A DNA stretch of 51,964 nucleotides from Basidiobolus meristosporus CBS 931.73 (lineage: Eukaryota; Fungi; Basidiobolomycota), in the NCBI GenBank assembly GCA_002104905.1, contig MCFE01000622.1:1-51964 (forward strand), given 5' to 3'. How positions within the stretch are numbered: position 1 is the first letter of the stretch; each line of letters starts with the position of its first letter. Position numbers and translations under genes: made by a program. The notes below the pieces were generated by a model, which was not told where the DNA came from, searched no databases, and saw only the letters and a list, made by a program, of their open reading frames with translations. Positions 649 to 51,964 of this stretch are shown here, piece by piece.

Positions 649-1815
649 ATGGCGGTTGTTTACGAACTGAACAACACAGTATTTTTAGTGTTGTGTGGAC
701 TTTCTGGATTCTGCAGCATAATACTCGGTTCCTCTCTTGCAGGAACTTTGGATATTAGGGATGTGGACCATCCTGAAAATACTCACAATAGTAACATCAA
801 AATGGATATGATATTACCATTATCTGTAATGCGACACTTCATCACACAGCTTATTGGGATCGAGTTGATCAAAACCAACAAAAAGTCTTTGAAAACGGTG
901 GTTCAGTCTGTCTTCGAGGGAAGCGCTTACTTGGTGAATCCCCTGGTGCAAAATAGCAATATAGGAATATCAGTTAGCGCCGAGAAATATGAAAGTAAAC
1001 CGAATCCATCCAAGAAACTTGAGTTGTCGCTAATAGATCACCCGGATATACGCATGGCAGTGGAATCTGGATGTCTAACAAGAGTGAAGGAAAAAGACGT
1101 ACCTTTGCTGATGCGCAGAGATCTAGCGGTGTATCGTATATCAGGGAACAGATTTATCTCTTACCTGGGAAGTATAACCGCACTGTGTGTGACCTCCCTG
1201 TGGATTCATTGCATCTATGTAGTTACTCGAAACTTGCAGAATCATAATGGCACACCTGGAGCTAAGAGGATCATGGTTCTAACGATTCCGTTGCTTTTTA
1301 TCCCACTACTCTGTAGAACATCATTATATAAGGGTCCTGTAATTGTCCATGTCGAGGATGATGATGGTTGTTCCAAAAGCATAAATTTCACTGAGTCAAA
1401 AATCCGTGGCAATGAATCCGATGAGAGGAACACAAGAGACGGCTCTGACGTAGGCGATTTGATTTATCAGAAGATGCTCATCCGTTATAGGATTCAGCGA
1501 ATCGTGGGCTCACTGTTCTTTATGCTGCTATTTTATGCAGTATACTTTGCGATATCTGCAATAGCTTCTATGGATACTGATACCGATTCGACAGATCAGA
1601 ATTCGTACTGGTATATATTTGGTTATTATGTTATAACTTTCACCAAACTCTGCAGACTTGCGGAACCAATGGTCCATTGTCTTTTGTGCTACATTTCGCT
1701 AGGTAAAGTCGTTTTTCATCAGCGAAAACCATTGCAAGTACTCTCGATGTGTGAGAAAATCTTAACAGTGATATATTATGTAGTTACCCCTTCGGCAAAT
1801 TTTAGCGCAGTGTAG
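649..1815 (+). CDS. Uncharacterised multi-pass membrane protein, array copy A (388 aa)
   Basis: Intact intronless ORF with family motifs RHFITQLIGIELIKT, QSVFEGSAY, KKLELS, SLYKGPV, RYRIQRIVGSL, LAEPMVHC. About 5-7 hydrophobic segments; TATAAA at ~597. Confidence 0.85.
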   Translation: MAVVYELNNTVFLVLCGLSGFCSIILGSSLAGTLDIRDVDHPENTHNSNIKMDMILPLSVMRHFITQLIGIELIKTNKKSLKTVVQSVFEGSAYLVNPLVQNSNIGISVSAEKYESKPNPSKKLELSLIDHPDIRMAVESGCLTRVKEKDVPLLMRRDLAVYRISGNRFISYLGSITALCVTSLWIHCIYVVTRNLQNHNGTPGAKRIMVLTIPLLFIPLLCRTSLYKGPVIVHVEDDDGCSKSINFTESKIRGNESDERNTRDGSDVGDLIYQKMLIRYRIQRIVGSLFFMLLFYAVYFAISAIASMDTDTDSTDQNSYWYIFGYYVITFTKLCRLAEPMVHCLLCYISLGKVVFHQRKPLQVLSMCEKILTVIYYVVTPSANFSAV

Positions 1816-2731
1816 GAAATAAAAGGCAATTTCTGTATACTTCAGATGTATACACCACGCTCATATTTGTCACAGTCAAAGCTGGTGATAATCCAGTAAA
1901 TGAAGACCAAGTTCCAAAACCCAGGCAGGAAGTTTTATCTGCATTTGTTACCGGCCTGGGTGGGTAGATAGAATTATCTGCTACGGTGACTATGCAGAGC
2001 CAGCAGTACATTGTCTAGAATGTCTGTTCCGACTGTGCATGGCGACTTTCTCCAATAGTCGTATCTTGAAAGCACTTTCGTATTGCGAAAATGGCTTGCA
2101 TTATATAGATCTCCTTCTATTACCTATGGCATTCTTTACCTTTTGAAAAAGCATCAGCATTAAATATAAGACCTGTAGATCTATGTTGCCGCGATGGTAC
2201 CTTCGGGAACCCTAATGATCATTAAAGGCTTCGATTGCGATCTACCATCATTAATATCGCATCACTCTCGTACATATCAATACCACGAATGTTGAAAAAC
2301 ATGCCCTAATAATGAGCCACAAGTTCGTTTTATTTGCATCATATTGTTTCATTCATTAATATAGTAAAGGGCTTCAGAAAATAGCATACAAAGGTTTCTC
2401 TTCTACAATAACGATGCCACGAATGGAAATGGATTGTACTTGAGTAAATTCATAAAATCGGTGAACTAACATCAACGCTCCACTCAAACAATGTGACCAG
2501 TATACTATGATGGTCACAAACACTTTCAGGAGTATTCATGTATATATATATGGTTGCACGCAATGGTGTGGTAATACTAGCTATATGGTATGTTTGAAGT
2601 GGACTATATAATAGCTTATTTCAGCACACTGTCTGTGATGTATCTGGACAAGTATGATGCAACGTATATCGTGGTAGTGGTTAAGAGGCCAAAATCGTTC
2701 GGTAATCCTATTCTTTCGACTGTTCAAAATA

Positions 2732-2895
2732 TAAACATGGCTATAAATCATTACCGCAACGTCATCAACTAATATCCTGCATTCCGTGAAGTATTTGTGT
2801 ATCTTTCTCCGGGTACCCAGGTGATGTACGCAACAACGTTTTCAGCGTGACCACAATAAAAAAGGGCTGTCAGATAGACAACCCAAGTTATCCAA
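2732..2895 (+). repeat. Non-coding direct repeat upstream of copy B (partner at 1-165)
   Basis: Direct alignment to 1-165. Confidence 0.9.
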
Positions 2896-3303
2896 TATAA
2901 GGCTTTATAATTTCTGGCCTTCCTATTGAATGATCCTGTGATTTCCAGAATACTTAGCTGGCCAATACATCCTACACGTATGAATATTGTTGTGTAAGGC
3001 GGATCGGTATGGTAAAATATGAGTATCATTATTCATGTGCTATCCGCCTGGCTCTGATAAGTCTATGGGCTGTCCACATGGTACTGGTAAATCCTAACAA
3101 TATATCAATACCACACTTCGCGGGGTAGAAGTTTATCCATCAACGAATGTTCGATAGCATACAAATCTAAGAATGAATGGATAAAACAGTTTCCGATTCG
3201 AACAGGCACATGATATGTTATTCAATTTACAGATAAATCCATTTGATTACGAGTATAAGAGCTCTCACATACTCTGGCATTTACGATACAACCTGATTTA
3301 ATT

Positions 3304-4422
3304 ATGCTTGACTACGTTTTGAAAGACACCACATTAAAAGTACTGTTTTCGCTTTCTTCGTCCTCATCCTTGATACTCCTACTCTTTTTTGGGGCGAAAC
3401 GCATTGTTTTCGAAGCAAGTTATGGTAAAAAAAGCGCCACTGGCGACTATGAGAGGGCTATAACATTCCCATTATTTGCGGTTCGATACTACATCACACA
3501 GTTGGTGGGAATTAAGTTGGTCAAAACTGATCAAAAATCGGTGAAAATGGTGATTCAGTCCGTCTTCTCAGGAAATGCCTTCTTGGTGAATCCTCGCCCC
3601 CAAAATCGCACAAGTACTGCAGTTGCCATTAAGAAGCTTGAGTTGTCACTGCTGGATCAACCGACCACTCGCATAAAACCAGAATACAGATCCTTGATCA
3701 GGGTAAAGGAAGAAGACGTACCCTTGCTACTGCAAAGTGATCTATCGGTGTATCGCATACCCAAAAACAAGATTGTTTCTTACTTTGGAGGTATAGGCGC
3801 CCTGTGCGTGATATCCCTGTGGATATATAACCTTTATATAATTATACGAAGCCTGAAAAGCCTTGGCTACATACCCGGAGCTAATGCGAACACAAACCTA
3901 ATGTGGCCGACCATGTTCATTCCTCTTCTATGGAATACCTCAGTATATAAGGGCCCGGTGTTTGTCGCAGTTAATAGCTGTCCCAAGAATTTGGATTTCA
4001 TTGAGCCACAAGCCCATAGCAACGGATCCAATGTAAGGTGCACCACAGAAAGCACAGACATAAGCATTTCGACTCAAAAAATACTCGTTCGTTATAGAAT
4101 CCAGCGACTCTTGGGCTCGCTACTTTATATGATCTTGTATTATGCAGTATACTTTGTAATAGCCGTATTAGCTACTATGGACACTATCATCGATACTGCA
4201 GATGAGAACCCACACCTTACTATGTTTGTTAACGGTTGTCTCGTTTTTCTCAGTTTCTGTAGACTTGCGGAGCCGATGGTACATTGCATTTTAAGCATCA
4301 TTTTATTAGGTCAAGTGGTCATTCATCACCAAAAACTATTACTAGTTCTCTCGATATGTGAGAAGATCTTATCAACGATCTATATTTTCGTTTTGCCTAT
4401 TGCAAATTTTGCCGTGGTATAA
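3304..4422 (+). CDS. Uncharacterised multi-pass membrane protein, copy B (372 aa)
   Basis: Intact ORF with RYYITQLVGIKLVKT, KKLELS, SVYKGPV, RYRIQRLLGSL, LAEPMVHC. Confidence 0.85.
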   Translation: MLDYVLKDTTLKVLFSLSSSSSLILLLFFGAKRIVFEASYGKKSATGDYERAITFPLFAVRYYITQLVGIKLVKTDQKSVKMVIQSVFSGNAFLVNPRPQNRTSTAVAIKKLELSLLDQPTTRIKPEYRSLIRVKEEDVPLLLQSDLSVYRIPKNKIVSYFGGIGALCVISLWIYNLYIIIRSLKSLGYIPGANANTNLMWPTMFIPLLWNTSVYKGPVFVAVNSCPKNLDFIEPQAHSNGSNVRCTTESTDISISTQKILVRYRIQRLLGSLLYMILYYAVYFVIAVLATMDTIIDTADENPHLTMFVNGCLVFLSFCRLAEPMVHCILSIILLGQVVIHHQKLLLVLSICEKILSTIYIFVLPIANFAVV

Positions 4423-4908
4423 TATAATAAATGGTCTCAAAAACCGGTAAATAAAGTTTGGACTCTTACTATACAAGAATATAAGGGATATATACAACTC
4501 AATTTGAATACGTACACCTATTAGCACATGCAGTCACTCGATCATGTTAAGATCCATTTCCAGAAATCCGGAATCTCGGAAACCCATAAACCAACGCCCA
4601 CATGGTTCGAATATCTCACCTAATTAATTCTTTTACGCAGGGAAAGTTATCCAATACTAGCAAGATAAAAGAAAACGTGACTTTGGCGTATGCACGGACT
4701 GTCCGAATGACTGTGTTTAGTCTCAATGATTGAGAGATAAATTATTGGCCACCAAGGAATATTCGATACCCTTTAATCTAAAAATGTACGAATAAAGTTA
4801 TGCTGTTCTTTTGGAGGTGAAGGTGAACCTGCAAGGAATATTCGATACCTACACACAAGAATGCACAGAAAAAATTGGTTCGATTTCAAAACACACGGCA
4901 TATGATTA

Positions 4909-5873
4909 ATGGATGCTATAGCTGTGTTGGGGGTTTTATTCATTTCGCGGTATATGTGAGATCAGTTTAGACCAATATCGAGCTATTGCCTTTCCATTGT
5001 TTGCAGTCTGACTTCTTGTCACAGAGTTTGTGGGGATTGAGTCAATCAAAACCGGTCAAGAATGTACGAAAATGGCGATTCAGTCTGTCTTCGAGGGAAA
5101 TGCATTCTTTGTTGATCCTCGTACGCAAAGCGACATGACAAGCATTAAAAATGGCGCTGGGAAAGATCAAAGCAAACCAAACCCATCGAAGAAACTTTTT
5201 AGTATCAATTGATGAACCGAATGCTCGCATAACAACAGAATATGAATATCTGACAAAGGTGAATGAAGAAGGTATCTATCTGCTACTACAAAGTAATTTA
5301 TTGGTGTATCGTATAACTGAAAACAAGACTATATCCTACGTGAGCAGTATTGGTGTTCTCTGTATGACGTTCTTCTGGATGTATAGTATTTATGTAATTA
5401 CATGAAGCCCGATGAACGTTGGTTACATAAGTGGAGCTAAAAAGATCAGTATAAGGACATTAATCACTGTGAATGCAGATGATTGTCCTATTAGTATATA
5501 ATATATAGAATCATCCAATGTAAACAAGAAAATATGGAATTCCAACACCGATAATTTGACTCAAAAAGAAGCTCTCATTCATGTTCTCGGCTCATTGTTC
5601 TATATGATCTTGTTCTATTCAGCATACTGTAGATATGCAGTATTGGTTGTTCCTGAGGTCAATGCAGAATCCACAGAACAGAAAATGATCGGTTTCCCAG
5701 CGTTTTTTCGGTACAGTGCATGTCTAGAGCCAGCGACGTATAGCATTCGATGTTTGATCTCCTTGAGTCAAGCAAAATTCAGTCGACCTCAATTATCGCT
5801 TTGGCGTGAGTTTGTTATTTCACTCATACATGCCATTCTCATACCCGCGACAAATTTACTTCCGTCGTTGTGA
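4909..5873 (+). pseudogene. Degraded array copy C
   Basis: Family motifs are split across frames with stops: AIAFPLFAV*LLVTEFVGIESIKT, IQSVFEGNAF, LLVYRITE, VLGSLFYMIL, CLEPATY (ORF pieces 5030-5212, 5151-5405, 5556-5873). Start approximate. Confidence 0.8.
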
Positions 5874-7033
5874 AAGAACGTGTTGCCAAGCAAATTAATT
5901 ATAGAGAACCCAATCACTAACTCAACGCTACGATCTAGTGATCGGAGAGTGAATAAAGAGCGATGAAAAGCTTTGAAATGAGTGACCCGTTTCTCGTACG
6001 GGGCTGTTGGTGCATTGCATATTACTAGGTCAAGCATTTTTTCGACACCAAAAACTGTTGCATCTTCTCTCAATTTGTGAGAAAATTTTAACAGGGGTTC
6101 ATCGAATTGTTTACCCTCTTGCAAATGCAACCGCACTATAAAGCATTAATGGACTTCAAGTATTAGAATACACAGTTCTTAAAAACGTTATATATATATA
6201 CTGATTTTGTGCCACTGTAGCTTGTTTCTGTGTATTCCAAGAGTTGGCACCACTACGTATACAATGTTCTGACTTCACTCTTGTACAGGAATGTGTAACC
6301 GTGAAGTTGATAGCTTAGCACCCAACTTACGCGATTAGCATATATAGAAGTGCTATACACAAGGTTGTATTTAGCACTTTATCATGATCTGCCAAGACGT
6401 AATAAGATTTTCAATTCTTGAAGTGCATACACTCTGCTGTACGAATACTCCCATATGAAATAGAACAATAAATGCTTTGAATACAAATTTGACAGAGGCT
6501 GAGAAGCCAATACTATGTAAGGTAATGACTGCGACATTTTCCCTGATTGTGTATTTCAATACAACTAGCCCAAGAATCTAAGTCTAAAATGGCAATAAGC
6601 GCATGTGTAGTTTTGTGCCTATGCTGAGCACAGGCAGCCACAGGCATGGTCAATGTTTATTCAATGAGATCACCTATGAATACTTGGCAGTTTAAATTTC
6701 AAACGATCCACAAGGTTCTGAGATTGACCTATATTTGAATGAGACTGTTTAAGGCATATCAGAATGGGCCTAGTAGAAATTGTTATGAAATTTGCCACTA
6801 CCACACCTGTGAGGGTAAAAGTTCATCCATTGGAGAGAATGTTTTACCTTCCCTAGCATTGAATAGATGCGTATTTTAGGACCTGATAGGTATTGGATAT
6901 AAAGTACTCTGAGTACTCTGCTTCACATATTTCCGGATAACAGCATTATTATCTGATATGTGTAGGAGAATCAACAAATATAAAACCTTTCACATGCCTG
7001 CTCCTGACTTTGAACTTCAAGCCTGCAGTTAAT

Positions 7034-8188
7034 ATGTTTGACTCGGAGTTAAGTGAATATGTGCTTTTGGTGCTTTTTTGCCTTGTTGCTTTCTTTAGCT
7101 TGATGCTTCACTTTAACCTCATAGTGAAAAAAATCGTTTTCAATAGAAACCGGCGGGAGAAACCAACCTGCAGGGATTATGATCTAGCAGTTGGATTTCC
7201 GATATGTGCACTTCGACACTACATCACACAGCTTGTGAATATCGAGCTGATCCCAACTAACCAAAAAGTCCTGAAAGAAGTTATTCGATCTGCCATAGAG
7301 GGTAGTGCTTACTGGGTTAATCATCCCGAACGAGATAATGCTGCAAATGCCTCAAGTAGCACCGAGAATACCGACATTGAATCAAAATCATCCAAGCTGG
7401 TCCTATCGCCAGTAGATCAGCCAGACATTCGCATATCCACAGAATATGGACCTCTGATCAAGGTGAAGGATGAAGACATACACTTGCTATTGGAAAACGA
7501 GATATCGATATCACATGTACCAGAATCGAAGCTGCTTTCTTACCTGAAGAAATTGGGTTTTTGGTGTGCACTACTCTACTGGGTGTATGTAATTCACGAG
7601 ATTTTCCAGAGCTGGCTGAGCCTCGGCTACGTAACCGATGGTCAGATCCTCACAAATCTAACGAATCCATTCTTCCTTATTCCGCTTCTGCACAACACCT
7701 CGGTGTATAAGCCGATGCTATTTATCACCGTAGAAACTGGTGATTTTCCTCCAAGCATGGCTTTTGCTAAACTGGATGCACGAGATGAAAAATCCAATAC
7801 TTGTGATGCAAGCAATACACCGGAAATTCCTGGTTCAAGCAAATCAATGCAGAGGGAAGCCCTTATCCGATATAGCATTCAGCGAATTTTGGGATCCATA
7901 CTGTACATGATCCTATATTACCCACTATATTTTGGATTGGCTGCATTGACTACTTCGAGAGCCGATACTGCCTTTAGCCAAGTGGAATTGACCTACCTAA
8001 TATTCATCAGGTACTGTCTACTTGCAGAACCGATTGTGCCTTGCATCCGTAGCTTAGTTACATTAGGGCAAGTAACGTTTTATCATCCAAATGTATTACG
8101 ACTACTCTCATGGTGTGAATTTATCTTAATGCATGTACATGCCATTCTTTTACCTATTTCATCTATACTATGGATTTTCTTAATTTGA
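7034..8188 (+). CDS. Uncharacterised multi-pass membrane protein, copy D (~384 aa)
   Basis: Intact ORF with RHYITQLVNIELIPT, SVYKPM, RYSIQRILGSILYMILYYPLY, LAEPIVPC. ATG 7034 chosen over TTG 7010 because of the TATA box at ~6979 and family alignment. Confidence 0.85.
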   Translation: MFDSELSEYVLLVLFCLVAFFSLMLHFNLIVKKIVFNRNRREKPTCRDYDLAVGFPICALRHYITQLVNIELIPTNQKVLKEVIRSAIEGSAYWVNHPERDNAANASSSTENTDIESKSSKLVLSPVDQPDIRISTEYGPLIKVKDEDIHLLLENEISISHVPESKLLSYLKKLGFWCALLYWVYVIHEIFQSWLSLGYVTDGQILTNLTNPFFLIPLLHNTSVYKPMLFITVETGDFPPSMAFAKLDARDEKSNTCDASNTPEIPGSSKSMQREALIRYSIQRILGSILYMILYYPLYFGLAALTTSRADTAFSQVELTYLIFIRYCLLAEPIVPCIRSLVTLGQVTFYHPNVLRLLSWCEFILMHVHAILLPISSILWIFLI

Positions 8189-8559
8189 GAAATGAACTAT
8201 TATCAAATGCTCTCAATGCTGGCGAACCATAGCTTAATAAACAGAGGCATTGAAATTATGTAAAGTAAATAAAGAGCACTAGCTAGTTTGACGATATGTA
8301 TAGAAAATGGATAGTAGTTGTAATTATCGACTGTGAGTGTTCCAAGTTTTCAGCATACTACAAAAGATCTTCATGATGTATGTGGTAGATTCAACGGAAG
8401 TAGCGATGTAAATCATTTTGACAGAAGGATCACTAAATCACAAATTCACTTTAACTGTTGCGAAAGGTTTAAATGATTTAGTGCATCAGTCAATATCTTT
8501 ATGACTGATATTTTAGGCGACTACAGGAATGCCAAAGATAGATTGATATTTTCTGTGTA

Positions 8560-9105
8560 CAGCATCCTTATATCAGGGCCTCCTGTCGCCATGGACATTG
8601 ATGATTGTCCCTTTGGCATGGAGCTTGGCACCTGTATCAATGAATTCAATATATGCAAGACAAAAGCAAATCCTGTTATTGGCGATTTGAATCGAGTTAT
8701 TTATCCACACTAGCTACTATGGCTTTTGTGACTGTATCTACAGCTCAGCAACTGAAACACTCCAATTTTTTTATTTCATACCTCGAATTAGAGTCAGTAG
8801 ACTTGCGGAATATAATGCATCATGTAGTATTGTTCACTAGATACAATATCAGCCCTTTTATACCAACTATTTAATTGTGCTTAAATGGGGTTGTAAATAC
8901 TTTAATACTACTTCTTACTTGGTATCTCGCAAAAAGAAGATACCATATAAACTGTATTTGAAGATGACACACCAAAATCATCCAAGAAACTTGAAATGTC
9001 GCCGATAGATATGTCGAACGCTTGCATCATGAAAAAAATCGATATTTGACAAAGATGAAAGTTGGCACATTGAGAAGATATCGAAATATCGGGCCATTGT
9101 TTGAA
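8560..9105 (+). pseudogene. Highly eroded family fragments
   Basis: Short matches: GPPVAMDIDDCP (~8575), LATM (~8712), RLAEY (~8800), PKSSKKLEMSPID...RYLTKMK (~8970-9060). Boundaries approximate. Confidence 0.55.
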
Positions 9106-9436
9106 GCACCAATGATGAACATGTTTTACGATCCCAAAAGATGGGACCTAATCAATATAGAATATTAGTCCACTGGCCCACCACATGACTTTGGTAAGCT
9201 TCGGGAACAGATCAATCAATGCCATATTCCAGGGAGGTAAACATTCAACCTTTGAAGAACATCCGATATCATCCAAATCTGAGAATCCACGGTTAATATT
9301 ATATTCGATTTGAACGGGTATGGAACGCTTGCAAGCTGGTGTTGTGGGTGCTTCAACTGAATTCCATATAAATCCCGTGGAATTGAAATAACGAAGTCCT
9401 CAAACAACCACTTTCGCATTTAACTCTAGGTTGAAT

Positions 9437-10595
9437 ATGTTCGACTATCGTCTGGACGACACTGCATTTGGAGTGTTGCTTCTACTCTCAGGATCCACTA
9501 GCCTGCCTCTCTTCTTCTTCCTTCTAGTGAAACGCAAAATATTCAACAACGATGAATTCATCTCCCATGTCAATTGCTTTTGCTATTCAATTTCCAGTAC
9601 TTGGAGTGCGGCATTTCATCACACAGCTTGTGGGAATTGATTTGGTCAAAACTGACCAGAAAATCAGGGGAATGGTGGTTCAGTCCGTCTTCGATGGCAA
9701 TGCCTACTTGATTGATCCTCAGGCGCTAAATAGCAGCACAGACATTGCAGATGGCACTGAGGAAGTCAAAGGTGAACCAAAAGCATCCAAGAAGCTTGTC
9801 TTATCAGCGGTTGATCAATCTGCAACTGGCATGACCATAAACTCGAGATATTTGACGAGGATGAAAGAAGAAGATGTACCCCTGATACTAAGCAGTAATC
9901 TATCGGTGTATCGCATACCAGAATCCAAGGTTATCACCTACTTGGGAAGTATAGGCTCGCTGTGCGTAGCTTCTCTGTGGATATATAGCATTTGTGCAGC
10001 TAAACGAAGCCTGCAAAGCCTTGGTTACATACCTGGAGCTAGCATGATCGAGTTTCTAATGTGCCCGGTGCTCTATTATCCATTTCTGTGTAAAAACTCA
10101 TTATACAAGGGTCCCGTTTTTATCAATGTGAAAGTTGGCAATTATCCCTCCAGAAGGGATTACTTAGAGCCTGACACAAATAGTAATGGACCCGGTGTGT
10201 GGAAGTCATAAGTAAGTGCTGACGTTCTCGATTTAACTCATCAGAAGTTGCTCCTCCGCTATAGGGTTCAATGAGTTGTAGGCTCGCCCGTCTATATGTT
10301 ACTATATTATCCAGTATACTTTGCAATAGCCGCACTAGCTACTATGGATACTGGCACTGTTCCTATAGCTTGTGGACCGTTATTATCCAAGTTCAATTAT
10401 TGGTTTAATGCTTATATCACATTCTCTAGACTTGCGGAGCCGGTAGTGCATTGCCTTGTATGTTTCATACTATTAGGTCAAGTAGTCAATCGTCATCCCA
10501 AGCCGTTGAAAGTACTCTCGATATTTGAGAATATCCTCACTGTGATATATGTTTTGGCTTTAGCTGCTTCAAATATTTTAGCTATAAGACATTAA
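9437..10595 (+). pseudogene. Array copy E, frameshifted with premature stops
   Basis: Frameshift near 9580 relative to copy H, TAA at 10209-10211, and TGA at ~10272 where paralogs have CGA (RIQR). Otherwise full length. Confidence 0.85.
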
Positions 10596-11162
10596 AGTGT
10601 CTCAAAACAATATGTTGACAGCGATAAGTCTCACAATCACAACAATTAGAATTCTTCATTTTCTATGCAGTGGTTGACTATTTCATATATCTGATGTATG
10701 GCAATATTATGACGTCATAATATTACATCATCTATGTTAACAAATATGATCAGTGCGTGTTTGGAATGGCAATCAGTGCATGTGTACTTTCATGCCTATT
10801 CTGTTCACAGTCAGTCACTGGCATCACATATGAGATCTATGAAATATCTCGATAAATTATGATTCAGGCAGTTCACTCTACAATCCAGGGAGCGCTTACT
10901 TCGTTATATGACGAATATTCAACTAGACTAGGGCTCTCGGTAATGCGCCACAGAGATAAAAGTTTAACCATCGCATGATATTCGATATGATCCAAATCTA
11001 GGAATGTACCAACAAATTTGCTCTCGACCTGAACAGCCACGGCTAATGATAATCATAGTTCATCTCTATTAAATATGCTTCAATAGTGTTCAGCGAACTC
11101 CTGCTGAAACCACTACATAGTGTACCTCTGAAAATCTTGCTTCTACGTTTTTACATAACTCA

Positions 11163-12317
11163 ATGATGAGTGACTATAGACTGGACAACACTGCATTTAA
11201 TGTGTTATATGGCATTTCTATATTCTCCAGTGCAATACTCAAAATAACTTGGGATAGTCGCAGTGTAAATCATCCTGAAAATTACCTCAATAGCGACTAC
11301 GAAATGGCTATGGTATTTCCATTATACGCCATCCGTCACTATATCACGCAGCTTGTGGGCACTGAGTTGGTCGATATTGATCAAAAATCATTGAAAACGG
11401 TGATTCAGTCTGTCTTCGAGGGACGTGCTTACTTGATTACTCCTATAGTGCAGAGTAGTAAAATAGGCACCGCAGAAGGCACTGAGAAGGTTGAAAGTGA
11501 ACGAAACCAGTCCAAGAAGCTTGAGCTATCACTTTTAGATCACCCGGATACTCGCATGACAGCAGAATACAAATCTTTGATGAAGGTGAAGAAAGAAGAC
11601 ATACCCTGGCTACTGCAATGTGATCTATCGGTGTATCGTATGCGAAAAATCAAGATTATCTCCTACTTTGAAAGTGTAGGTGCACTCTGTGTGACATCCC
11701 TGTGGATCCATAGCTTATATGTAGTTGCACAAAGCTTGCAGAATCAGATTGGCTTACCTGGAGCTATGAAGATCACACGTCTAATGATTCCGTTGCTTTT
11801 TATTCCACTCCTATGTAAAACCTCATTATCGAAGGGCCCCGTATATATCACAGCGAAAGTTGATGGTTCCCTCAAAGGCAAAGGTTTCATTGAGTCAAAC
11901 ATTCGTGGCAATGGAATCAATGCGCAGAAGGCAGCAGATAGTTCCGAAATAGGTGAATTAACTCCTCAGAAAATACTCATCTGCTATAGGATTCAACGAC
12001 TCTTGGGCTCACTACTCTATATGATTTTGTACTACGCAGTGTACTTCGTAATAGTCACATTAGCTACTCTTGATACCGACCCTGACTCTACAGACCTGCT
12101 TATGTATATTTTTAGGCTTTCTTATTGTCTTGTATTTATCAGCAAATCCTGCATTCTTGCGGAGCCAATGGTTCATTTCCTTTTGTGCTCTACTTTGCTC
12201 GCCAAAGTAGTTTTTCATCAGCAAAAACTATTGCAAGTACTCTCGATATGTGAGCTGATACTAACAAGGATACATCTTATTATTCTTCCTTTTGTAAATG
12301 CTACTGTACCGATATAG
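11163..12317 (+). CDS. Uncharacterised multi-pass membrane protein, copy F (384 aa)
   Basis: Intact ORF with all family motifs; upstream element most similar to that of copy A. Confidence 0.85.
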   Translation: MMSDYRLDNTAFNVLYGISIFSSAILKITWDSRSVNHPENYLNSDYEMAMVFPLYAIRHYITQLVGTELVDIDQKSLKTVIQSVFEGRAYLITPIVQSSKIGTAEGTEKVESERNQSKKLELSLLDHPDTRMTAEYKSLMKVKKEDIPWLLQCDLSVYRMRKIKIISYFESVGALCVTSLWIHSLYVVAQSLQNQIGLPGAMKITRLMIPLLFIPLLCKTSLSKGPVYITAKVDGSLKGKGFIESNIRGNGINAQKAADSSEIGELTPQKILICYRIQRLLGSLLYMILYYAVYFVIVTLATLDTDPDSTDLLMYIFRLSYCLVFISKSCILAEPMVHFLLCSTLLAKVVFHQQKLLQVLSICELILTRIHLIILPFVNATVPI

Positions 12318-13368
12318 TTATCGGCTTTACGATCCCAGTGTATCGTACCTAACCATGATACATATAATCTTATTGCCTATTGAAAGCTGTGCCACTTTAG
12401 CTTATTTCTTTATATTCTAAGAGTTGACTCCACCTCGGTTCATAAAGGTGTGTCTGTTTGCTATTTATCATAACAGCTGGCAAGATATCACAGGGTTGTG
12501 TTGTACAATCTCTCAAAGTACGACCTACTATGTGGATATTCCAATACGAAGTAGTACATTAGATGCCATTAGATTCATGATACAGGTTGAGAAGCCTAAA
12601 TCATCTAGTATAAACCAGAGTTGCAAGCGGATGTAAGTTACATGAACAAAACAATTGGACATGAGTTATCCGAAATACATAAACCGGGTACCAATCAGAT
12701 GGGATTATATGAAACCAGGCTCAAGAGTTTAATCCCAGATTGTCAACGTGCCACCCGCATGGTTCTGGTTAACCCCGAGTGATAATCAATGCCATTCATA
12801 GAAGGCAAATGTTAGCCCATTAAAGAATAGTCGATATCATCCACATGGAGGAATGCACTGATAAAATCGTATTAGGCTTTATCACGTATAGAATTTCTCT
12901 CACGTATTAGTTGGATACATGTATTGTCATTATGAAATACGCGAGATTCTTTCATCATCCACATCATAACTCCATACATTCGTCTCCCATATTGTGCAAT
13001 ACCTGGGTGTATACGTCACTTGAATTTGTCACGGTAAAATTTTATTATTTTCCCCCATACGAATTTTACAGGGCAAGGTGCCATCAATCCCATACTTCAG
13101 AAGGTAAACGTTTAGCCTTGTGAGAATATTCAATAGCATCCAAGTCAAAGTATCCACCGATAATATTGTATTCAGAACAAACGATGATTGATAGCAACTA
13201 AATCTAGGAATATACGGATAAAATCACTTTTGAATTCAGCAGGTACACCATATGGTTAATATCATTCGTTGCTTTGTACATAATTCTACCCACTCCCGCA
13301 TTCACTATCCAATGTCCATCATACTTTTAATACATTTTATTGTTTTGGCAGCTGCCAATTTTACCAAA

Positions 13369-13660
13369 ATGCAAGAATATGAAGAGCTAGACTATGATTT
13401 TTACGGCACTATATTTGCAGTGTTACTCGGACTTTCCTTGTCTTTGAGTCTAATATTCTTGAACAAACTTTTCAAGAGACCCGATGCTTTCAAAATACTA
13501 AATTATCGTCTAATAATAAGAATAATAATCCTGATAAGCGAGTCGCTTTCACACAGAGCAATCTCTCTCTTGCTATGGCATATTCATTAGCCGGAGTCCG
13601 ACACTATATCACGCAGCTTGTAGGAATCGACTTGGCCAAAACTGACAACAAATCTTTATT
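13369..13660 (+). pseudogene. 5' fragment of a family copy
   Basis: DYDFYGTIFAVLLGLSLSL, a frameshift, then AGVRHYITQLVGIDLAKTDNKSL, then abrupt truncation. Confidence 0.7.
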
Positions 13661-13888
13661 GAGTCAGATCTCCACCGGTAGGACTTGCTTTTGACTTCCT
13701 CGTATTGACTCCATTACTATAGGTGTCAGACTCAATTTAATCCGTGCTGGAGACATAATCATCTCCTTCCACAGCGACAAACACAGGGCCCTTATATAAG
13801 AAGGTTTTACATAACAGAGGGGGAAAGATAAGCGTGTTCATTAGAAACATGATCCCATTTGCTCCATTTGCTCCAGGTATGTAGTCTT
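13657..13888 (-). pseudogene. Internal fragment of a family copy, inverted
   Basis: Minus strand reads DYIPGANGANGIMFLMNTLIFPPLLCKTFLYKGPVFVAVEGDDYVSSTD*IESDT...GDLTQ*. Confidence 0.75.
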
Positions 13889-13902
13889 AGTACTGACAAG
13901 CC

Positions 13903-14053
13903 TTTTATTAGTTGCACATACAACATGCTGAAATTCCCTACAAGTCCATATCAACATCCATGTGGGCCACGGCGCATTTCTAATAGATTTGAATTTAACA
14001 GATGGGATATGGTAGATGATGAGCAAGATGATATGTATATATATATATATATT

Positions 14054-14100
<47 letters not shown>

Positions 14101-14268
14101 CATAATGAAAATGAGAGAATACAGCCATTGCTAAACTTGGCAAATCCTAATCCATTTTCTCGTTATGCTTGTCACCTATCCACCAGGACCATGTCATGCA
14201 GAAAGAATAATTATGCATCAATTTCAGAAGCAAATAGCCAAGCGAGAGCATCATCGATGCCCTCCAAC
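13903..14268. repeat. Left inverted repeat (IR-L): 3' tail and 3' flank of copy G, with (TA)n and (TG)~20 microsatellite
   Basis: Reverse complement of 17174-17520. About 100 bp (14097-14200) is identical. Confidence 0.92.
14036..14096. repeat. Compound microsatellite (TA)n-(TG)~20
   Basis: Directly visible; a shorter (CA)n partner lies at ~17346-17368. Confidence 0.95.
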
Positions 14269-15280
14269 GACGAATTATTTCTTCATCTGAGGCAATGTAG
14301 CAAAGAATACAATACAGAACTGGTTCTGCAAGCAAACAGTACCAGTAAAATACCCCCAAACGAGTCGTTTGCTGCCATTTAGCTAGGGAACTTAATCCAA
14401 AGTATGCTAGATAAAATGGAATCATGTAGAGGAACGAACCCAGGAATCGTTGAATCCTATACCAAGTGAGCACCTTCTTTGGGTTTGGAACGTCTACCCC
14501 AGGGTGTTCTTTTGACCGAATCTCATTAAACATGAACTCTTCGTCCGGCTTAACTGAAGATTTACTCAAGCAAGGATCATCACCAGTTTTCAGAGTAATA
14601 AACACGGGCCCCTTGTATATGGAATTGTTATAGAAAAACGGAATAAACAACGCCGGACGCATTAGATCTATAGCATCCCGACATTCAGGTATGCAACCCA
14701 AGCTCATAAAGCCATGAACTATTACATAAGCTTCAAACAACCAGTAGGAAAGTACGCACAGACAGCCCAACTTCGAGAGATAATACAAGACTTTTGAATC
14801 GGGCAGATAATATACGGATATATCATTCTCTAGCAGCACGGGTATGTCTGCTTCCTTCACTTTTGTCAAATATGTATAATCTGTTGTTACGCGAATGCCT
14901 GGCTGATCGATTGGCGACAATTCAAGCATGTTGGATAGTCGAGATTTGGAATCTTCAATCACAATTTTTCCCGTATCGCTTTCTTGAGTGAGAGCACCAA
15001 CCCAGTAGGCAGTACCGTCGAGGGCTGAGCGAAGAATCACATCCATGGATCTTTGGTCTGCTTTGGTCAACTTACTACTCATGAGCTGTGTAATATACCT
15101 TCGGACTACGGTCGCTGGATTTAGGGTAACTAGATCAATGCATTCTCTAAACGTGTAATACCGTGTAGTGGCGATATTAAACCTGACAACAGGACTGCAA
15201 AGCCACAAAAAGTACGAAATAAAGATGGCAGAAGATCTTAACACAGTATTTGTAGTGCCGTTCAGTTGTAATTCAATCAT
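14147..15280 (-). CDS. Uncharacterised multi-pass membrane protein, copy G (~377 aa), inverted
   Basis: RRYITQLMS, SIYKGPVF, WYRIQRFLGSFLYM, LAEPVLYC. ATG 15280 (MIELQLNGT) chosen from the TATA box at ~15325 and the family N-terminus. Confidence 0.82.
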   Translation of the reverse strand: MIELQLNGTTNTVLRSSAIFISYFLWLCSPVVRFNIATTRYYTFRECIDLVTLNPATVVRRYITQLMSSKLTKADQRSMDVILRSALDGTAYWVGALTQESDTGKIVIEDSKSRLSNMLELSPIDQPGIRVTTDYTYLTKVKEADIPVLLENDISVYYLPDSKVLYYLSKLGCLCVLSYWLFEAYVIVHGFMSLGCIPECRDAIDLMRPALFIPFFYNNSIYKGPVFITLKTGDDPCLSKSSVKPDEEFMFNEIRSKEHPGVDVPNPKKVLTWYRIQRFLGSFLYMIPFYLAYFGLSSLAKWQQTTRLGVFYWYCLLAEPVLYCILCYIASDEEIIRRWRASMMLSLGYLLLKLMHNYSFCMTWSWWIGDKHNEKMD

Positions 15281-15610
15281 TAGTAAGGACTGATGTCCAA
15301 CAAACTGCCATGAAGTCGGCCTTATATACATCGATTTCCTACCACCTGTTACATTTCCGTGTCTGGATTTGGATATAGGTGAGCCACACGATTAACCCAT
15401 TTCCATCCACCCATTCCTGAGTCTCAACTGAAAAAACATTCCCTGATAGTCGAAATCTCACATATCCAATTACGCAATTCGTGAGCCTTACCGCTGCCAA
15501 TGTATTACTACAGGCTTTACGAATTTATACTCATATCTGAGTGGAGCGGCGAATATTGTTATTGCAACGGACCACACTCTGTACGCCAATTTTTGAGACA
15601 CTTTAATGTC

Positions 15611-16771
15611 TTATATAAATAAAGCATTTGTAATAGACAAAACAAAACAGTATATCGGAGTGAGGGTATTCTCAAATATCGAGAGTACTTTCAACAGCTT
15701 GGGATGACGAATGACTACTTGACCTAATAGTATGAAACATGCAAGGCAATGCATTACTGGCTCCGCAAGTTTACAGAATGCGATACTAGCATTAAACCAA
15801 TAAATAAACTTAGATAATCGCGGCCCCAGAGCTATAGGAACAGTGTCAGTATCCATAGTAGCTAGTGCGGCTATTGCAAAGTATACTGCATAATACAATA
15901 ACATATAGATGAGTGAGCCTACAACTCGTTGAATCCTATAGCGGAAGAGTAACTTCTGGTGAGTTGAATTGATAATATCAGAGCTTGATTTTGCCTTCCA
16001 CACATCGAGTCCATTGCTCTTGATATCAGACCCGATGTAATCCTTACTGAATGGGCCATCATCACCTTTCACATCGACAAACACAGGGCCCTTGCATAAT
16101 GAGGTTTTACACAGAAGGGGGATAAACAACCCTGGTAATATTACGTGTCTGATAAGTTTAGCACCAGGTATGTATCCAAGGCTCCTCAGGCTTTGTGTAG
16201 CTGCACAAATGCTATATATCCACAGAGAAGCTACGCACAGTGAGCCTATACTTCCCAAGTAGGTGATAACCTTGGATTCTGGTATGCGATACACCGATAG
16301 ATTACTGCTTAGTATCAGGGGTACATCTTCTTCTTTCATCCTCGTCAAATATCTCGAGTTTATGGTCACGCCAGTTGCAGATTGATCAACCGCTGATAAG
16401 ACAAGCTTCTTGGATGCTTTTGGTTCACCTTTGACTTCCTCAGTGCCATCTGCAATGTCTGTGCTGCTATTTAGCGCCTGAGGATCAATCAAGTAGGCAT
16501 TGCCATCGAAGACGGACTGAACCACCATTCCCCTGATTTTCTGGTCAGTTTTGACCAAATCAAATCCCACAAGCTGTGTGATGAAATGCCGCACTCCAAG
16601 TACTGGAAATTGAATAGCTGAACGGTAATTGATATGGGAGATAATTTGACGCTCATCTATCTTGAAACTTGCACGTTTCAATACAAGAAAGTAGATGATC
16701 AACAGGTTGAGACATAGTGGGAGTAGAAGTAACACTCCAAATGTAGTTTCATCCAGACCGTAGCTCATCAT
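15611..16771 (-). CDS. Uncharacterised multi-pass membrane protein, copy H (386 aa), inverted
   Basis: Intact ORF with all motifs; TATA box at ~16815 and upstream element at 16868-16935 on the minus strand. Confidence 0.85.
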   Translation of the reverse strand: MMSYGLDETTFGVLLLLPLCLNLLIIYFLVLKRASFKIDERQIISHINYRSAIQFPVLGVRHFITQLVGFDLVKTDQKIRGMVVQSVFDGNAYLIDPQALNSSTDIADGTEEVKGEPKASKKLVLSAVDQSATGVTINSRYLTRMKEEDVPLILSSNLSVYRIPESKVITYLGSIGSLCVASLWIYSICAATQSLRSLGYIPGAKLIRHVILPGLFIPLLCKTSLCKGPVFVDVKGDDGPFSKDYIGSDIKSNGLDVWKAKSSSDIINSTHQKLLFRYRIQRVVGSLIYMLLYYAVYFAIAALATMDTDTVPIALGPRLSKFIYWFNASIAFCKLAEPVMHCLACFILLGQVVIRHPKLLKVLSIFENTLTPIYCFVLSITNALFI

Positions 16772-17173
16772 GATAAGAGTTGGAGTTCAATACAAAAGCA
16801 ATTGTGTGGGTGCTTTTATATTCAGATTCCATTATCCGTAACTGCTGAAATCGAATACGATTTTTTCCGTGGATGCTTTGATTTGGATGATTTCGAATAT
16901 ACTACAATGGGTAAACATTTACTTCCCTGGAATATGGCGATATCCACATTTCAAGGTGGTGATTGTTGATGATGCTATATCAATGTTTTCCGCAAAATGC
17001 AGGACAACTTATAAGGGGACCCAGATATTGTTGAGCTCACTATCAAGTGTGCGGTTTATGATGACATTCAAATAGCAACTTGGCGTCATAACAATATTTT
17101 TTGCGAAATATAGAACAATACAGGGGGATTTTGTAGAAAGCCCATAAATTGCTTAACTCGATATTGAGTGTGT

Positions 17174-17520
17174 GTTGGAGGACATCAATGATGCACTCGC
17201 TTGGCTATGTGTTTCTGAAATTGATACATAATTCTACTTTCTTCATGACATGGTCCTGGTGGATAGGTGACAAGCATAACGAGAAAATGGATTAGGATTT
17301 GCCAAGTTTAGCAATGGCTGTATTCTCTCATTTTCATTATGATTTACACACACACACACACACACACATAAATATATATACATATACATATCATCTTGCT
17401 CATCATCTACCATATCCCATCCGTTAAATTCAAATCTATTAGAAATGCGCTTTAGCCCACATGGATGTTGATATGGACTTGTAGGGTATTTCAGCATGTT
17501 GTATGTGCAGCTAATAAACA
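17174..17520. repeat. Right inverted repeat (IR-R), carrying an in-frame alternative C-terminal tail of copy G
   Basis: Plus strand 17175-17295 reads WRTSMMHSLGYVFLKLIHNSTFFMTWSWWIGDKHNEKMD*, versus the G tail WRASMMLSLGYLLLKLMHNYSFCMTWSWWIGDKHNEKMD*. Confidence 0.92.
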
Positions 17521-18382
17521 GCCTACCAGTGTTGTGTTGCGAGTAGTAGGATGTTAACTTTCAAAATAACACAACGGCCTTAACTAAGGAATGTATCCTG
17601 TTTGCAGCATGATATAGCTCGCCTTTACACGTCACAATCGAATTGAAGCTGAATAGCGTAGCAGGTTTTTTTTGCCATAGTTTTCTACGACCACTTACAT
17701 TGTGCTATAGTTTAGAGGCTTTTGAAACTTGCAATACCAATGATGTGGTCAACTTAACCCAAACGGGATGTGCATCCGATGCAATGATCAGTAAGCTATG
17801 GGTTCGCAATTGTTCATTATCTGAAGGGATATAGCATACTTGAGACAAGCCACATTGGCTACATTAGAGGTTGATGCCGAATCCACAAATTAGAATAGAT
17901 AGATAACCTCACCTTGATTGTATTATACTCTATGGAAGTTGTTACGATGTATAATATACATTCACTTGTTAACCGCTCAACTCCTGAACTCTCTTTTAAA
18001 TTGTTCTGCATTTTGGAGAATATATTATTGTAGCATCATCGACAATCACCATTTTGCCATGTGAACATGGCTGTGTTAGACAAATCAATATAGCAGATTG
18101 CGAAAATAGAGTTCGTTGGTCCACCGCATGACTTTGGTAAGCTTCGTGAACTGCTCAATCAATGCCACATTCCAGGGAGGTAAACATTCAACCTTTGAAG
18201 AACATCCGATATCATCCAAATCTAAGAATCCACGGTTAATATTGTATTCGCCTTGAACGGGTATGGAACGCTTGCCAGCTGGTGTGTAGGTGCTTAACTA
18301 AATTTCATATAAATCCCCTGGAATTGAACTAGCAAAGCCCTCAAATAACCACTTTCGTAGTTAACTCCAGCCTTACGTGATT

Positions 18383-18930
18383 ATGTTCGACTATCGTCTG
18401 GACGACACTGCATTTGGAGTGTTGTTTCTACTCTCAGGATCCATTAGCAAAAGCATCCAAGAAGCTTGTCTTATCAGCGGTTGATCAATCTGCAACTGGC
18501 ATGACCATAAACTCGAGATATTTGACGAGGATGAAAGAAGATGTACCCCTGATACTAAGCAGTAATCTATCGGTGTATCGCATACCAGAATCCAAGGTTA
18601 TCACCTACTTGGGAAGTATAGGCTCACTGTGCGTAGCTTCTCTGTGGATATATAGCATTTGTGCAGCTACGCAAAGCCTGAGGAGCCTTGGATACATACC
18701 TGGAACTAGCATGATCGAGTTTCAAAAGGGCCCGGTGCTCTATTATCCATTTCTGTGAAAAACCTCATTATACAAGGGCACCATTTTTGTCAATGTGAAA
18801 GTTGGTAATTATTCCCCCAGAAGGGATTACTTTGAGCCTGACACGATATTCGAGAACATCCTCATACTGATGCATGCTATATTTTTACCTGCTACAAATA
18901 TGATTATGACAAGCCATCAAGATGCTTCAA
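18383..18930 (+). pseudogene. Array copy I, chimeric with two internal deletions
   Basis: Promoter 18110-18380 matches 9165-9435. Relative to copy E it lacks ~9502-9777 and ~10178-10519, and it contains copy-H-like patches. End approximate. Confidence 0.85.
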
Positions 18931-19400
18931 AAATTGGCTTACAAAGTGTGGTCTGTTGTGTTGCAATCGCAATATTCGCAGTTCCACTTAGATAGGAGTG
19001 TATTGATCTAATCTCCATATAGTAGATATAGAGAGAATTGATGATACTTGTGACTTCGGAACTTCTCACGTCTGAGAGTTCGCCTGGATACTCATTTAAT
19101 AATCGGTCAAGCTTATTTGTAAAAGGTTACATTATGCTACTCCAGTTATATATCAGTAGTATTCATGGATATGAATATGGGGTTATAAGGATTATCCAAG
19201 TGGTCCTGGTAGGATCCAACAAAAGATCTATCAATGCCGTTTTTAGAACGGTAAAGGTATAGCCGTCAAAGAACATCCGATACCATCCTTTAACGATGAT
19301 ATATAGAATCAGCAAGCACGCCATATGATTGCTGTGCTAAGGATAGGATATAAACCACTCATACGCCATTCTTGTGTACCATTTCCAGCACTTATTCATT

Positions 19401-20534
19401 ATGGTCGACCTGGGGCTAAATGGAACTGCATTTGCAGCGCATTCTATTCTTGTTTTGCTCTTAACCTCGATACTTCACGCCATCCATTTAGACAAACGTA
19501 TTGTGATGGCAATGACATATTTATCCAGCCGGCCTATGGATTCTACCATTAGCGACTACGCTCTAGCTATTCGGTATCCATTATGTGCAGTCCGATACTA
19601 CATCACCCAACTAGTGGATATTGATCTGATTAAAACCAGCCGGAAGCCCTTGAAAATAGTGATGCAGTCTATTTTTGAGGGTAGTGCTATCTGGGTTAAC
19701 CCCCTCGCACTTCGTGGCATAAAAAGTGTTGCAAGTAGTCATGAGATAGACGATCGTGAGCCAAAATTTTACAAGAAGCGTACCCTCTCGCTGATAGTTC
19801 GACCAGATAATCGCATAACAATAAAACACGGACCATGGGAGCAGGTAAATGCCGGATCCGTATCTTTACTAGTGGAAAGCAAGCTGTCAGCGAGTCATAT
19901 GCTGGAAACGAAGCTCACCTATTACCTGAGACGTATAGGTTGTCTGTGTGTTACTTCATACCTGATACATGGCATCTATGCAATTATTCAAAGCTTAAGG
20001 AACTTTGGCTATATACCTGGGGCTCACAAGATCATGGGTTTGATATCGCCGTTTCTTTTTGTTCCTTTTCTATGCAATACATCAGTATTCCAGGCCCCTG
20101 TTCTCGTTACGGTGGAAGTCGATGACTGCTCCGTGCACAATCAGGGTCAAGGATCCAATTCAAGCAAGACAGAAGAAAGCTCCAAAATGGATAGCTCAAC
20201 TCAACGGGCGATGCTCATCCGCTATAGGATCCAACAACTCGTGGGCTCGCTACTCTTCATGTCCCTGTACTATGCAGTATTCTCGCTAACCTTATCATTA
20301 TCTGCTATGGATAATGATTCTGACGCAATAAGTCATGTACTTTACTATTATTTAATGCTTGGCAGATTCAGTAAGATTGCGGAGCCAATGGTCCACTGCT
20401 TTTTATGCTTCATTTTATTAGGACAAGCAGTCTTACATCAAGGACAACTATTACAAGTACTCTCAATGTGTAAGTATGTCCTAATAAGGATACATACTAT
20501 TGTTTTGTTCGGGGCATACTTTGCCCTTCTTTAA
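19401..20534 (+). CDS. Uncharacterised multi-pass membrane protein, copy J (~377 aa)
   Basis: RYYITQLVDIDLIKT, QSIFEGSA, RYRIQQLVGSL, IAEPMVHC. ATG 19401 (MVDLGLNGT) follows the TATA box at ~19349. Confidence 0.85.
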   Translation: MVDLGLNGTAFAAHSILVLLLTSILHAIHLDKRIVMAMTYLSSRPMDSTISDYALAIRYPLCAVRYYITQLVDIDLIKTSRKPLKIVMQSIFEGSAIWVNPLALRGIKSVASSHEIDDREPKFYKKRTLSLIVRPDNRITIKHGPWEQVNAGSVSLLVESKLSASHMLETKLTYYLRRIGCLCVTSYLIHGIYAIIQSLRNFGYIPGAHKIMGLISPFLFVPFLCNTSVFQAPVLVTVEVDDCSVHNQGQGSNSSKTEESSKMDSSTQRAMLIRYRIQQLVGSLLFMSLYYAVFSLTLSLSAMDNDSDAISHVLYYYLMLGRFSKIAEPMVHCFLCFILLGQAVLHQGQLLQVLSMCKYVLIRIHTIVLFGAYFALL

Positions 20535-51333: not shown

Positions 51334-51351
51334 TTAGGGTTAGGGTTAGGG
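51334..51351 (+). repeat. Interstitial telomeric tract (TTAGGG)3
   Basis: ttagggttagggttaggg lies between units 2 and 1. Confidence 0.9.
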
Positions 51352-51707: not shown

Positions 51708-51742
<35 letters not shown>

Positions 51743-51964
51743 GGTTAGGGTTAGGGTTAGGGTTAGGGTTAGGGTTAGGGTTAGGGTTAGGGTTAGGGTT
51801 AGGGTTAGGGTTAGGGTTAGGGTTAGGGTTAGGGTTAGGGTTAGGGTTAGGGTTAGGGTTAGGGTTAGGGTTAGGGTTAGGGTTAGGGTTAGGGTTAGGG
51901 TTAGGGTTAGGGTTAGGGTTAGGGTTAGGGTTAGGGTTAGGGTTAGGGTTAGGGTTAGGGTTAG
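51708..51964 (+). repeat. Telomere (TTAGGG)n, ~43 units
   Basis: G-rich strand runs 5'->3' to the window end, with one TTTAGGG variant at ~51720. Confidence 0.99.

Follow-up and report, generated by a model that had tools for sequence, protein, structure and literature searches.

A subtelomeric array of intronless genes in Basidiobolus meristosporus encodes an orphan family of predicted six-span membrane proteins

What does a tandem array of strongly diverged, intronless genes near a chromosome end encode, and does it belong to anything already known? We addressed this question for the window analyzed here, which is the whole 51,964-bp scaffold of Basidiobolus meristosporus CBS 931.73, with the array lying within its first 20.5 kb (positions 649–20534). 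An initial annotation of this DNA had proposed an unrecognised, lineage-specific membrane protein family in birth-and-death evolution, with a resemblance to seven-transmembrane (7TM) receptors coupled to G proteins (G-protein-coupled receptors, GPCRs); the family and its mode of evolution stand, and the receptor resemblance does not. The account that we consider probable, if well short of certain, is a genuine orphan family of six-span membrane proteins restricted to Basidiobolus, located in a dynamic subtelomeric array, with a core function that we infer.

Gene content and kinship of the array

Within positions 649–20534 we identified seven complete, intronless and paralogous open reading frames (ORFs) of 372–394 amino acids, named A, B, D, F, G, H and J, which align end to end with no intron-like gaps. 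Together with three pseudogenes (C, E and I) and at least five fragments, they form the inventory that the initial annotation had listed, and which our ORF calls and tblastn recovered. The coordinates given below follow eukaryotic ATG starts; the full ORFs of D (read with the bacterial code), G and J begin further 5'.

649–1815, + strand: gene A, intact; ORF of 388 amino acids; sister of F in the tree (support 100/99)
3304–4422, + strand: gene B, intact; ORF of 372 amino acids
7034–8188, + strand: gene D, intact; ORF from 7010, first ATG at 7034, 384 amino acids; deepest branch of the window clade
11163–12317, + strand: gene F, intact; ORF of 384 amino acids
14147–15280, − strand: gene G, intact; ORF to 15331, likely ATG at 15280, 377 amino acids
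15611–16771, − strand: gene H, intact; ORF of 386 amino acids
19401–20534, + strand: gene J, intact; ORF from 19374, first ATG at 19401, 377 amino acids
4961–5861 with a tail at 6007–6138, + strand: pseudogene C, heavily decayed (tblastn)
9437–10586, + strand: pseudogene E, full length; frameshift near codons 49–52, in-frame stops at codons 261 and 282
~18380–18960, + strand: pseudogene I; internal deletion and one stop (tblastn match at 18435–18920)
1961–2143, + strand: C-terminal fragment matching A residues 338–386 at 41% identity (tblastn)
13533–13724, + strand: fragment covering residues 41–102 (tblastn)
13638–13883, − strand: fragment covering residues 197–275 (tblastn), opposite in orientation to the overlapping fragment at 13533–13724
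17176–17292, + strand: G-like C-terminal fragment, 79% identical to G residues 356–394 (tblastn)

Pseudogene C survives as pieces at 4970–5197, 5163–5855 and 6022–6132, in frames 2, 3 and 1, which are 30–57% identical to F in tblastn, and pseudogene I retains its start region, residues ~118–250 and a C-terminal remnant. No family match was found by tblastn with the seven proteins in the remaining 31 kb of the window, beyond 20.5 kb. The ATG-start products of D (384 amino acids) and G (377 amino acids) are identical to annotated NCBI/UniRef proteins, and the ATG-read products of A and B had no exact match within the protein collection. Among the gene models of the Joint Genome Institute (JGI), K493DRAFT_307493 (671 amino acids) splices pseudogene E onto gene F (9552–12317), and K493DRAFT_307496 (347 amino acids) shortens gene J and adds an unrelated C-terminus. 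Public annotation of the locus is unreliable, so that comparative work would count too few members of the family.

The paralogs are strongly diverged around fixed motifs, as had been described: the other copies are 30–55% identical to A, and the motifs previously listed (RxYITQLV and others) are real and map to alignment columns that are invariant among the window copies. In A numbering, these columns include R62, I65-T66-Q67-L68, S87, G91, L126-S127, Y280, I282-Q283, G287-S288, M292, Y296 and A338-E339-P340. The most divergent copy is G, with an unusual C-terminus and a branch length of 1.52.

A profile hidden Markov model of the seven copies was scored against 1.84 billion representatives of ~15 billion proteins. 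It returned 11 matches, all of them from Basidiobolus, in agreement with the lineage restriction proposed at the outset. Five are models from the window itself, and six are more distant, with E values of 3e-40 to 5e-20: K493DRAFT_314992, as well as K493DRAFT_301710 and K493DRAFT_315232 on another contig, in B. meristosporus, and K7432_005796, K7432_003868 and K7432_010964 in B. ranarum. K493DRAFT_315231 is a near-twin of K493DRAFT_315232, drawn from the latter's 90%-identity cluster, and the presence of K493DRAFT_301710, K493DRAFT_315231 and K493DRAFT_315232 on one contig suggests a second array. Word-based searches yielded no additional family members. The sister subfamily formed by these distant proteins is only 21–25% identical to H, with homology over the full length; in our alignment A3 it has the same length, six hydrophobic helices and hydropathy peaks as the window copies, and the motifs P..R..ITQ.V.I, RS..DG.AYWV, KEDIPLL, IP.L, PVFV.LESD, RY..Q..GS and E..VH are common to both subfamilies.

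A maximum-likelihood tree was built from nine window sequences (the seven genes plus E and I, the latter two entered in main-frame translation with X at each stop) and seven sister proteins. The window clade and the sister clade are each supported at 100/100, and the branching order within the window clade is D, then G on its long branch, J, B, the A+F pair, and H with E and I; pseudogenes I and E group together with support 98/94. Because the window clade contains no annotated B. ranarum protein, the expansion that produced the array seems to be confined to B. meristosporus, a reading subject to the poor annotation of the family and to the clustering of the library, which would hide orthologs more than 50% identical.

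Searches for known families and folds gave no meaningful match. Pfam, run with all 14 members at E≤10, gave scattered noise only, NCBIfam gave only a SecD/SecF scrap (E 0.14), and a profile search of all PDB sequences gave a single scrap (E=2.2). The AlphaFold2 model used for structural comparison was computed from the 14-sequence alignment A3 and reached a mean predicted local distance difference test score (pLDDT) of 61 and a predicted template modelling score of 0.59, with membrane helices at pLDDT 70–86; a run with the seven window copies had given pLDDT 39. Foldseek of the 14-sequence model against the PDB had a best E of 0.47 with a template modelling score of ~0.2, and VIA-align found no meaningful structural match. 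In the ESM Atlas, the best feature score was 0.88, to unnamed ciliate and diatom clusters and within the range of shuffled proteins; no named cluster matched, and structure template modelling scores were ≤0.28. The family thus proved as unassignable as the initial annotation had found it. It lies outside every known family visible to these searches. In addition, our search of the literature on Basidiobolus, GPCRs, gustatory receptors and gene family expansion found no account of it.

Nothing points to a foreign origin: the composition is native, with third-position GC content (GC3) of 0.41–0.46 in the array genes, equal to that of their neighbours. A bacterial or archaeal source was considered and rejected, since a scan of bacterial and archaeal genomes contained no relative, a result that excludes a prokaryotic source only. 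A viral source was likewise rejected, with a best Foldseek E of 1.5 against BFVD and the same native composition.

Predicted architecture and the receptor-like alternatives

Averaged over both subfamilies, hydropathy shows six peaks that are common to all members (H numbering): transmembrane helices TM1 at ~12–34, TM2 at 172–195, TM3 at 207–228, TM4 at 283–305, TM5 at 322–352 and TM6 at 360–385. The helices of the AlphaFold2 model coincide with these peaks (8–36, 167–197, 204–222, 264–304, 317–353 and 357–385). Net charge of the flanks is −1.1 at the N-terminus, +1.5 after TM1, +1.3 before TM2, +2.2 before TM4 (the RYRIQR segment), −1.8 in the TM4–5 loop and +1.4 in the TM5–6 loop. Sequons (N-x-S/T) precede TM1 in 5 of 12 full-length members, namely A, G and J, for which NxT sequons had already been noted, together with P0008 (three) and P0010. 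On the basis of the peaks, the flank charges and the sequons, we predict six spans, placing the short N-terminus and the C-terminus on the outer side of the membrane and loops 1 and 2 on the cytosolic side. The predicted cytosolic loops are ~135 and ~55 amino acids long, and the outer loops ~10 and 15–25.

The same model provides a view of the loops. The P-V-F-V strand, with which loop 2 opens, pairs with three strands of loop 1 (92–96, 141–144 and 157–162), and two helices added to these four strands complete a small alpha/beta unit built from both loops. Such a unit needs loops 1 and 2 on one side of the membrane, which agrees with the predicted topology. Each cytosolic loop also carries a low-confidence, variable, acidic and Ser-rich insert (97–140 and 237–265).

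The top-conserved stretch of the protein, F-P-x(4)-R-x-Y-I-T-Q-L-V at 55–70, is helical, charged and weakly hydrophobic, and for these reasons we read it as a juxtamembrane amphipathic helix. The surrounding helix at residues 45–68 is the candidate for a seventh span, with a mean hydropathy peak of 0.74 and charged residues. As a separate observation, the two juxtamembrane segments with the highest conservation, R-H-F-I-T-Q-L-V-G at 60–69 and R-Y-R-I-Q-R-V-V-G-S at 277–286, are alike, with a non-significant hhalign E of 0.06–0.2.

These features bear on the proposal that the array is a repertoire of seven-helix, GPCR-like receptors, in which helix 45–68 would be the seventh span, the C-terminus would lie inside and ligands would be sensed through G proteins. 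The N-terminal sequons and the orientation of the N-terminus toward the outside fit such receptors, and intronless, fast-diverging tandem arrays are generally known from animal chemoreceptor families. The sole whole-length structural alignments were to class A GPCRs and rhodopsins, at noise level, and a G-alpha gene lies 27 kb from the array, probably by coincidence. Nevertheless, the predicted helix count, the charge bias and the family models speak against the proposal, and the fold score lends it no support. The initial annotation had seen in the conserved segments a likeness to TM6 and TM7 of non-classical fungal GPCR-like receptors and had reckoned with seven helices. We found six hydrophobic peaks, a C-terminus placed outside by charge bias, and no match to any GPCR profile (Pfam 7tm_1/2/3, STE2, STE3, Git3, HlyIII and others; E≤10, 14 members), so that neither the likeness nor the helix number is upheld. 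We regard a GPCR-like repertoire as quite unlikely.

A related alternative is that the family is a remote member of the insect odorant and gustatory receptor (OR/GR) superfamily of ion channels with seven transmembrane domains (7TMICs), which would make its products ligand-gated tetrameric channels. UniRef names two of the B. ranarum homologs, P0007 (K7432_005796) and P0008 (K7432_003868), 'Odorant receptor' and 'Gustatory receptor'; these automatic names look machine-predicted and of unclear provenance, with no Pfam 7tm_6/7tm_7 match behind them. The length of ~380 amino acids, the outside C-terminus and the long TM4 and TM5 extending into the cytosol also recall 7TMICs, whose divergence is so great that they routinely escape sequence searches (PMC9998090). 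In fungi, they have so far been reported from chytrids and Blastocladiomycota only (bioRxiv 10.1101/2023.08.30.555482). Among the features used to recognize the superfamily (PMC9998090), the array proteins share only one, intracellular loops longer than the extracellular ones. Seven spans are reached only by counting helix 45–68 in addition to the six clear ones, and the N-terminus, intracellular in 7TMICs, is predicted to lie outside here, with a charge of −1.1 against +1.5 in the flank after TM1 and sequons before TM1. The last helix reads L-S-x-C-E-x-I-L-x-x-I-Y/H-x-x-V in place of the TM7 motif TYhhhhhQF, although that motif is weak outside insects (PMC9998090); there is no Pfam 7tm_6/7tm_7 match and no structural match. 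Since 7TMICs are hard to detect and the AlphaFold2 model is middling, we retain this alternative, as a very unlikely one.

Selection, sequence exchange and shared upstream elements

The ratio of nonsynonymous to synonymous substitution rates (dN/dS) is 0.36–0.75 in the 21 pairs of intact copies, mostly 0.4–0.5 and highest for G versus A (0.75), with synonymous divergence (dS) of 0.6–1.7. From these values the copies are old and constrained, if loosely. The intact copies are under moderate purifying selection, and a 380-codon frame kept seven times in DNA of 40% GC, with every one of the 21 pairs at a dN/dS below 1, is far beyond chance. Constraint is tightest in TM4 (0.25), TM3 with the PVFV strand (0.30) and TM5 (0.31), and loosest in the outward TM4–5 loop (0.81), TM6 with the C-terminus (0.73), the TM2–3 loop (0.67) and the N-terminus with TM1 (0.60). 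No region has dN/dS above 1; with seven sequences and dS near saturation (~1), site-specific positive selection is not detectable. For H versus pseudogene E, dN/dS is 0.71.

The array bears signs of rearrangement as well as duplication. Genes G and H run opposite to the other copies and lie between inverted repeats, both arms of which contain a G-type C-terminal coding end:

13892–14268: left arm of the inverted repeat, 91–92% complementary to the right arm; holds the last ~40 codons of G
14056–14096: (TG)20 run within the left arm
17174–17530: right arm of the inverted repeat; carries the G-like C-terminal fragment at 17176–17292 (+)

The G–H inverted repeats resemble a scar left by an inverted segmental duplication, and nothing seen at this segment pointed to programmed inversion. 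A second process is visible in H, in which positions 16198–16618 (−) are identical to 9582–10002 (+) of pseudogene E at 418 of 421 sites (99.3%), and positions 16164–16422 are nearly identical to 18448–18703 (+) of pseudogene I. H, E and I have a common sharp break near H codon 200, beyond which H and E are 67–71% identical and E and I are still alike. The near-identical tract and its sharp common break mark a recent gene-conversion event between the intact gene H and pseudogene copies; H and E, as partners, lie 5 kb apart and in opposite orientation. Duplication, pseudogenes and fragments thus bear out the birth-and-death evolution first proposed, to which conversion involving pseudogenes can now be added.

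TATA boxes are located 48–55 nt before the chosen ATGs of A, D, G, H and J, and gene F has none within 150 nt upstream:

Gene A: TATAAAT at −51
Gene D: TATAAAA at −55
Gene G: TATA box at −48 from the ATG at 15280
Gene H: TATAAAA at −49
Gene J: TATAAAC at −52
Gene B: degenerate TATAAG

Further upstream, ~230 nt from the ATG, a 17-nt core, GTAAAAGTTTANCCATC, occurs once each before A, B, D, F, H and J; gene G has a poor match to it. The window contains eight matches to this core against 0.72 expected, a count reached by no shuffle, and the core sits in a block of ~55 nt with 58% conservation, compared with 41–47% in the flanks. Its positions are as follows:

424–440: before A
3125–3141: before B
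6815–6831: before D
10956–10972: before F
16906–16922, − strand: before H
19251–19267: before J
13104–13120: orphan copy, before the 13.5-kb fragment

The TATA boxes and the conserved upstream element make each copy look like an independent transcription unit under shared control.

This body of evidence also bears on another explanation, in which the array is a functionless, decaying or selfish repeat of the subtelomeric zone whose ORFs stay open only because the copies duplicated recently and undergo gene conversion. Of the ten full or partial copies, three are pseudogenes, fragments accompany them, dN/dS is relatively high (0.4–0.5, and 0.75 for A versus G), and gene conversion is active. 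Against this, the copies are old (dS ~0.6–1.7), all of them keep frames of 372–388 codons with dN/dS below 1 in every pair, and constraint follows the structural elements of the protein. Promoter elements are conserved, the sister subfamily persists in a second species, and no transposon features were seen. A functionless repeat is, in our judgement, highly improbable.

The chromosomal position of the array follows from the right end of the scaffold, which is a telomere:

51708–51964, + strand: telomere, (TTAGGG) × 43, at the right scaffold end (Tandem Repeats Finder)

Since the scaffold terminates in this telomere, the array lies 31–51 kb from the chromosome end, and because the scaffold starts only 648 bp before gene A, the array may extend past the assembly. 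A 39-nt unit that contains the telomere repeat occurs at 51340–51418, just inside the telomere. The rest of the scaffold carries genes of ordinary fungal type, several of which have evident introns; they encode a trypsin-like protease, a DUF7729 secreted protein, a MAP kinase, a beta-lactamase-fold protein, an asparagine synthetase, an enoyl-CoA hydratase, a bZIP factor and a G-alpha subunit. Adjacent to the array are genes for the secreted, Cys-rich DUF7729 protein (26213–26902, −) and for a Ser/Ala-rich protein (28313–28828, +). The latter combines a 33-nt tandem repeat with a hydrophobic tail at the C-terminus, a possible signal for a glycosylphosphatidylinositol anchor.

Putative core function and comparison with known systems

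Across both subfamilies, only M1, P218 and G285–S286 are invariant; P229, V230, Y278, L292 and the mid-TM5 Glu, E337, are near-invariant, and H341, four residues past E337, is retained in most copies. We tentatively put forward a possible function: a channel, a transporter or an intramembrane sensor core arranged around the buried TM5 Glu, usually accompanied by the His. The conserved TM3–TM5 core, with its buried Glu/His, would bind or conduct a small charged solute, or would sense within the membrane; the cytosolic alpha/beta unit would couple or regulate this core toward the cell interior; and the variable outer face, together with the peripheral helices, may give each copy its own specificity. 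The array itself has expanded by duplication, one inversion, pseudogene decay and gene conversion, including exchange between intact genes and pseudogenes. Because very little of the protein faces outward and conservation is best in its intramembrane and cytosolic parts, the proteins appear less like classical ligand-binding surface receptors.

The same residues could be read as the active site of a membrane-embedded enzyme, such as a modifier of lipids or of the cell wall, formed by the TM5 Glu and His with juxtamembrane polar residues. Top conservation does fall in or at the edge of the membrane (R62/T66/Q67, G285–S286, E337 and H341), and the cytosolic alpha/beta unit could serve as the binding site for a substrate or cofactor. 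Nevertheless, the sole residues invariant across subfamilies (M1, P218, G285 and S286) are none of them typically catalytic, H341 is lost in two copies, D and G, and no enzyme family or fold matched; enzymes, moreover, seldom diversify to 30% identity within one array. An enzyme is therefore an unlikely solution.

Several points weigh against the six-span core that we prefer. First, the conserved helix 45–68 could be membrane-embedded, which would give seven spans. Second, H341 is replaced by Pro in D and by Tyr in G, which leaves the Glu alone as near-invariant, and the conserved charged residues are few, which is thin for a transporter. Third, hhalign of sub-alignments detected no internal repeat of 3+3 helices (probability ≤0.9%), a null result that counts as weak evidence because such repeats are often undetectable at the sequence level. 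Fourth, the confidence of the AlphaFold2 prediction is middling: it draws on 14 sequences, and the other four models scored 42–53. The loop alpha/beta unit was folded and compared only within the whole protein, and we make no claim of a new fold for it. Finally, the functional part of this account is inferred throughout.

A bolder version of the six-span account would see in the array a contingency-type repertoire, in which variable, outward-facing six-helix channels or sensors of a novel fold, encoded near a chromosome end, would be deployed through the shared promoter element and varied by conversion from pseudogenes and fragments. We consider this rather unlikely. If it were true, this early-diverging fungus of the gut would possess a surface system that generates diversity. 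Even apart from it, if the family is as isolated as the searches suggest, a class of membrane proteins has been invented or radically remodelled within one fungal genus, where amplification has brought it to at least a dozen genes across two subfamilies. Fungal genomes, though, commonly contain orphan multigene families. Basidiobolus inhabits the gut of amphibians and reptiles and is capable of infecting people, and to our knowledge little has been established about how it senses or resists the gut environment; a rapidly diversifying membrane protein family with a conserved core, encoded near a telomere, offers a reasonable starting point.

Comparison with known systems helps to place the orphan six-span family. 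The fungal GPCR-like 7TM classes (Ste2/Ste3, Git3/Gpr1, PAQR, Pth11, RTA1-like and others) are alike in being polytopic, with a short outside N-terminus and an occasional sequon; the array family differs in matching none of their models, and in its predicted six spans and outside C-terminus. The 7TMICs, which comprise the insect ORs and GRs, gustatory receptor-like proteins (GRLs), DUF3537 and PHTF, likewise form tandemly arrayed, fast-diverging repertoires, but the beta-containing cytosolic unit of the array family is not a 7TMIC feature. In its dynamics, the array resembles what is generally known of subtelomeric and tandem families, such as the intronless chemoreceptor arrays of animals and the PAU/FLO-type families of yeast, with which it has duplication, inversion, pseudogenes and conversion in common; no homology is claimed. 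It is located within ~50 kb of a telomere. Its proteins, however, are unrelated to those of either group, and no region of them has dN/dS above 1.

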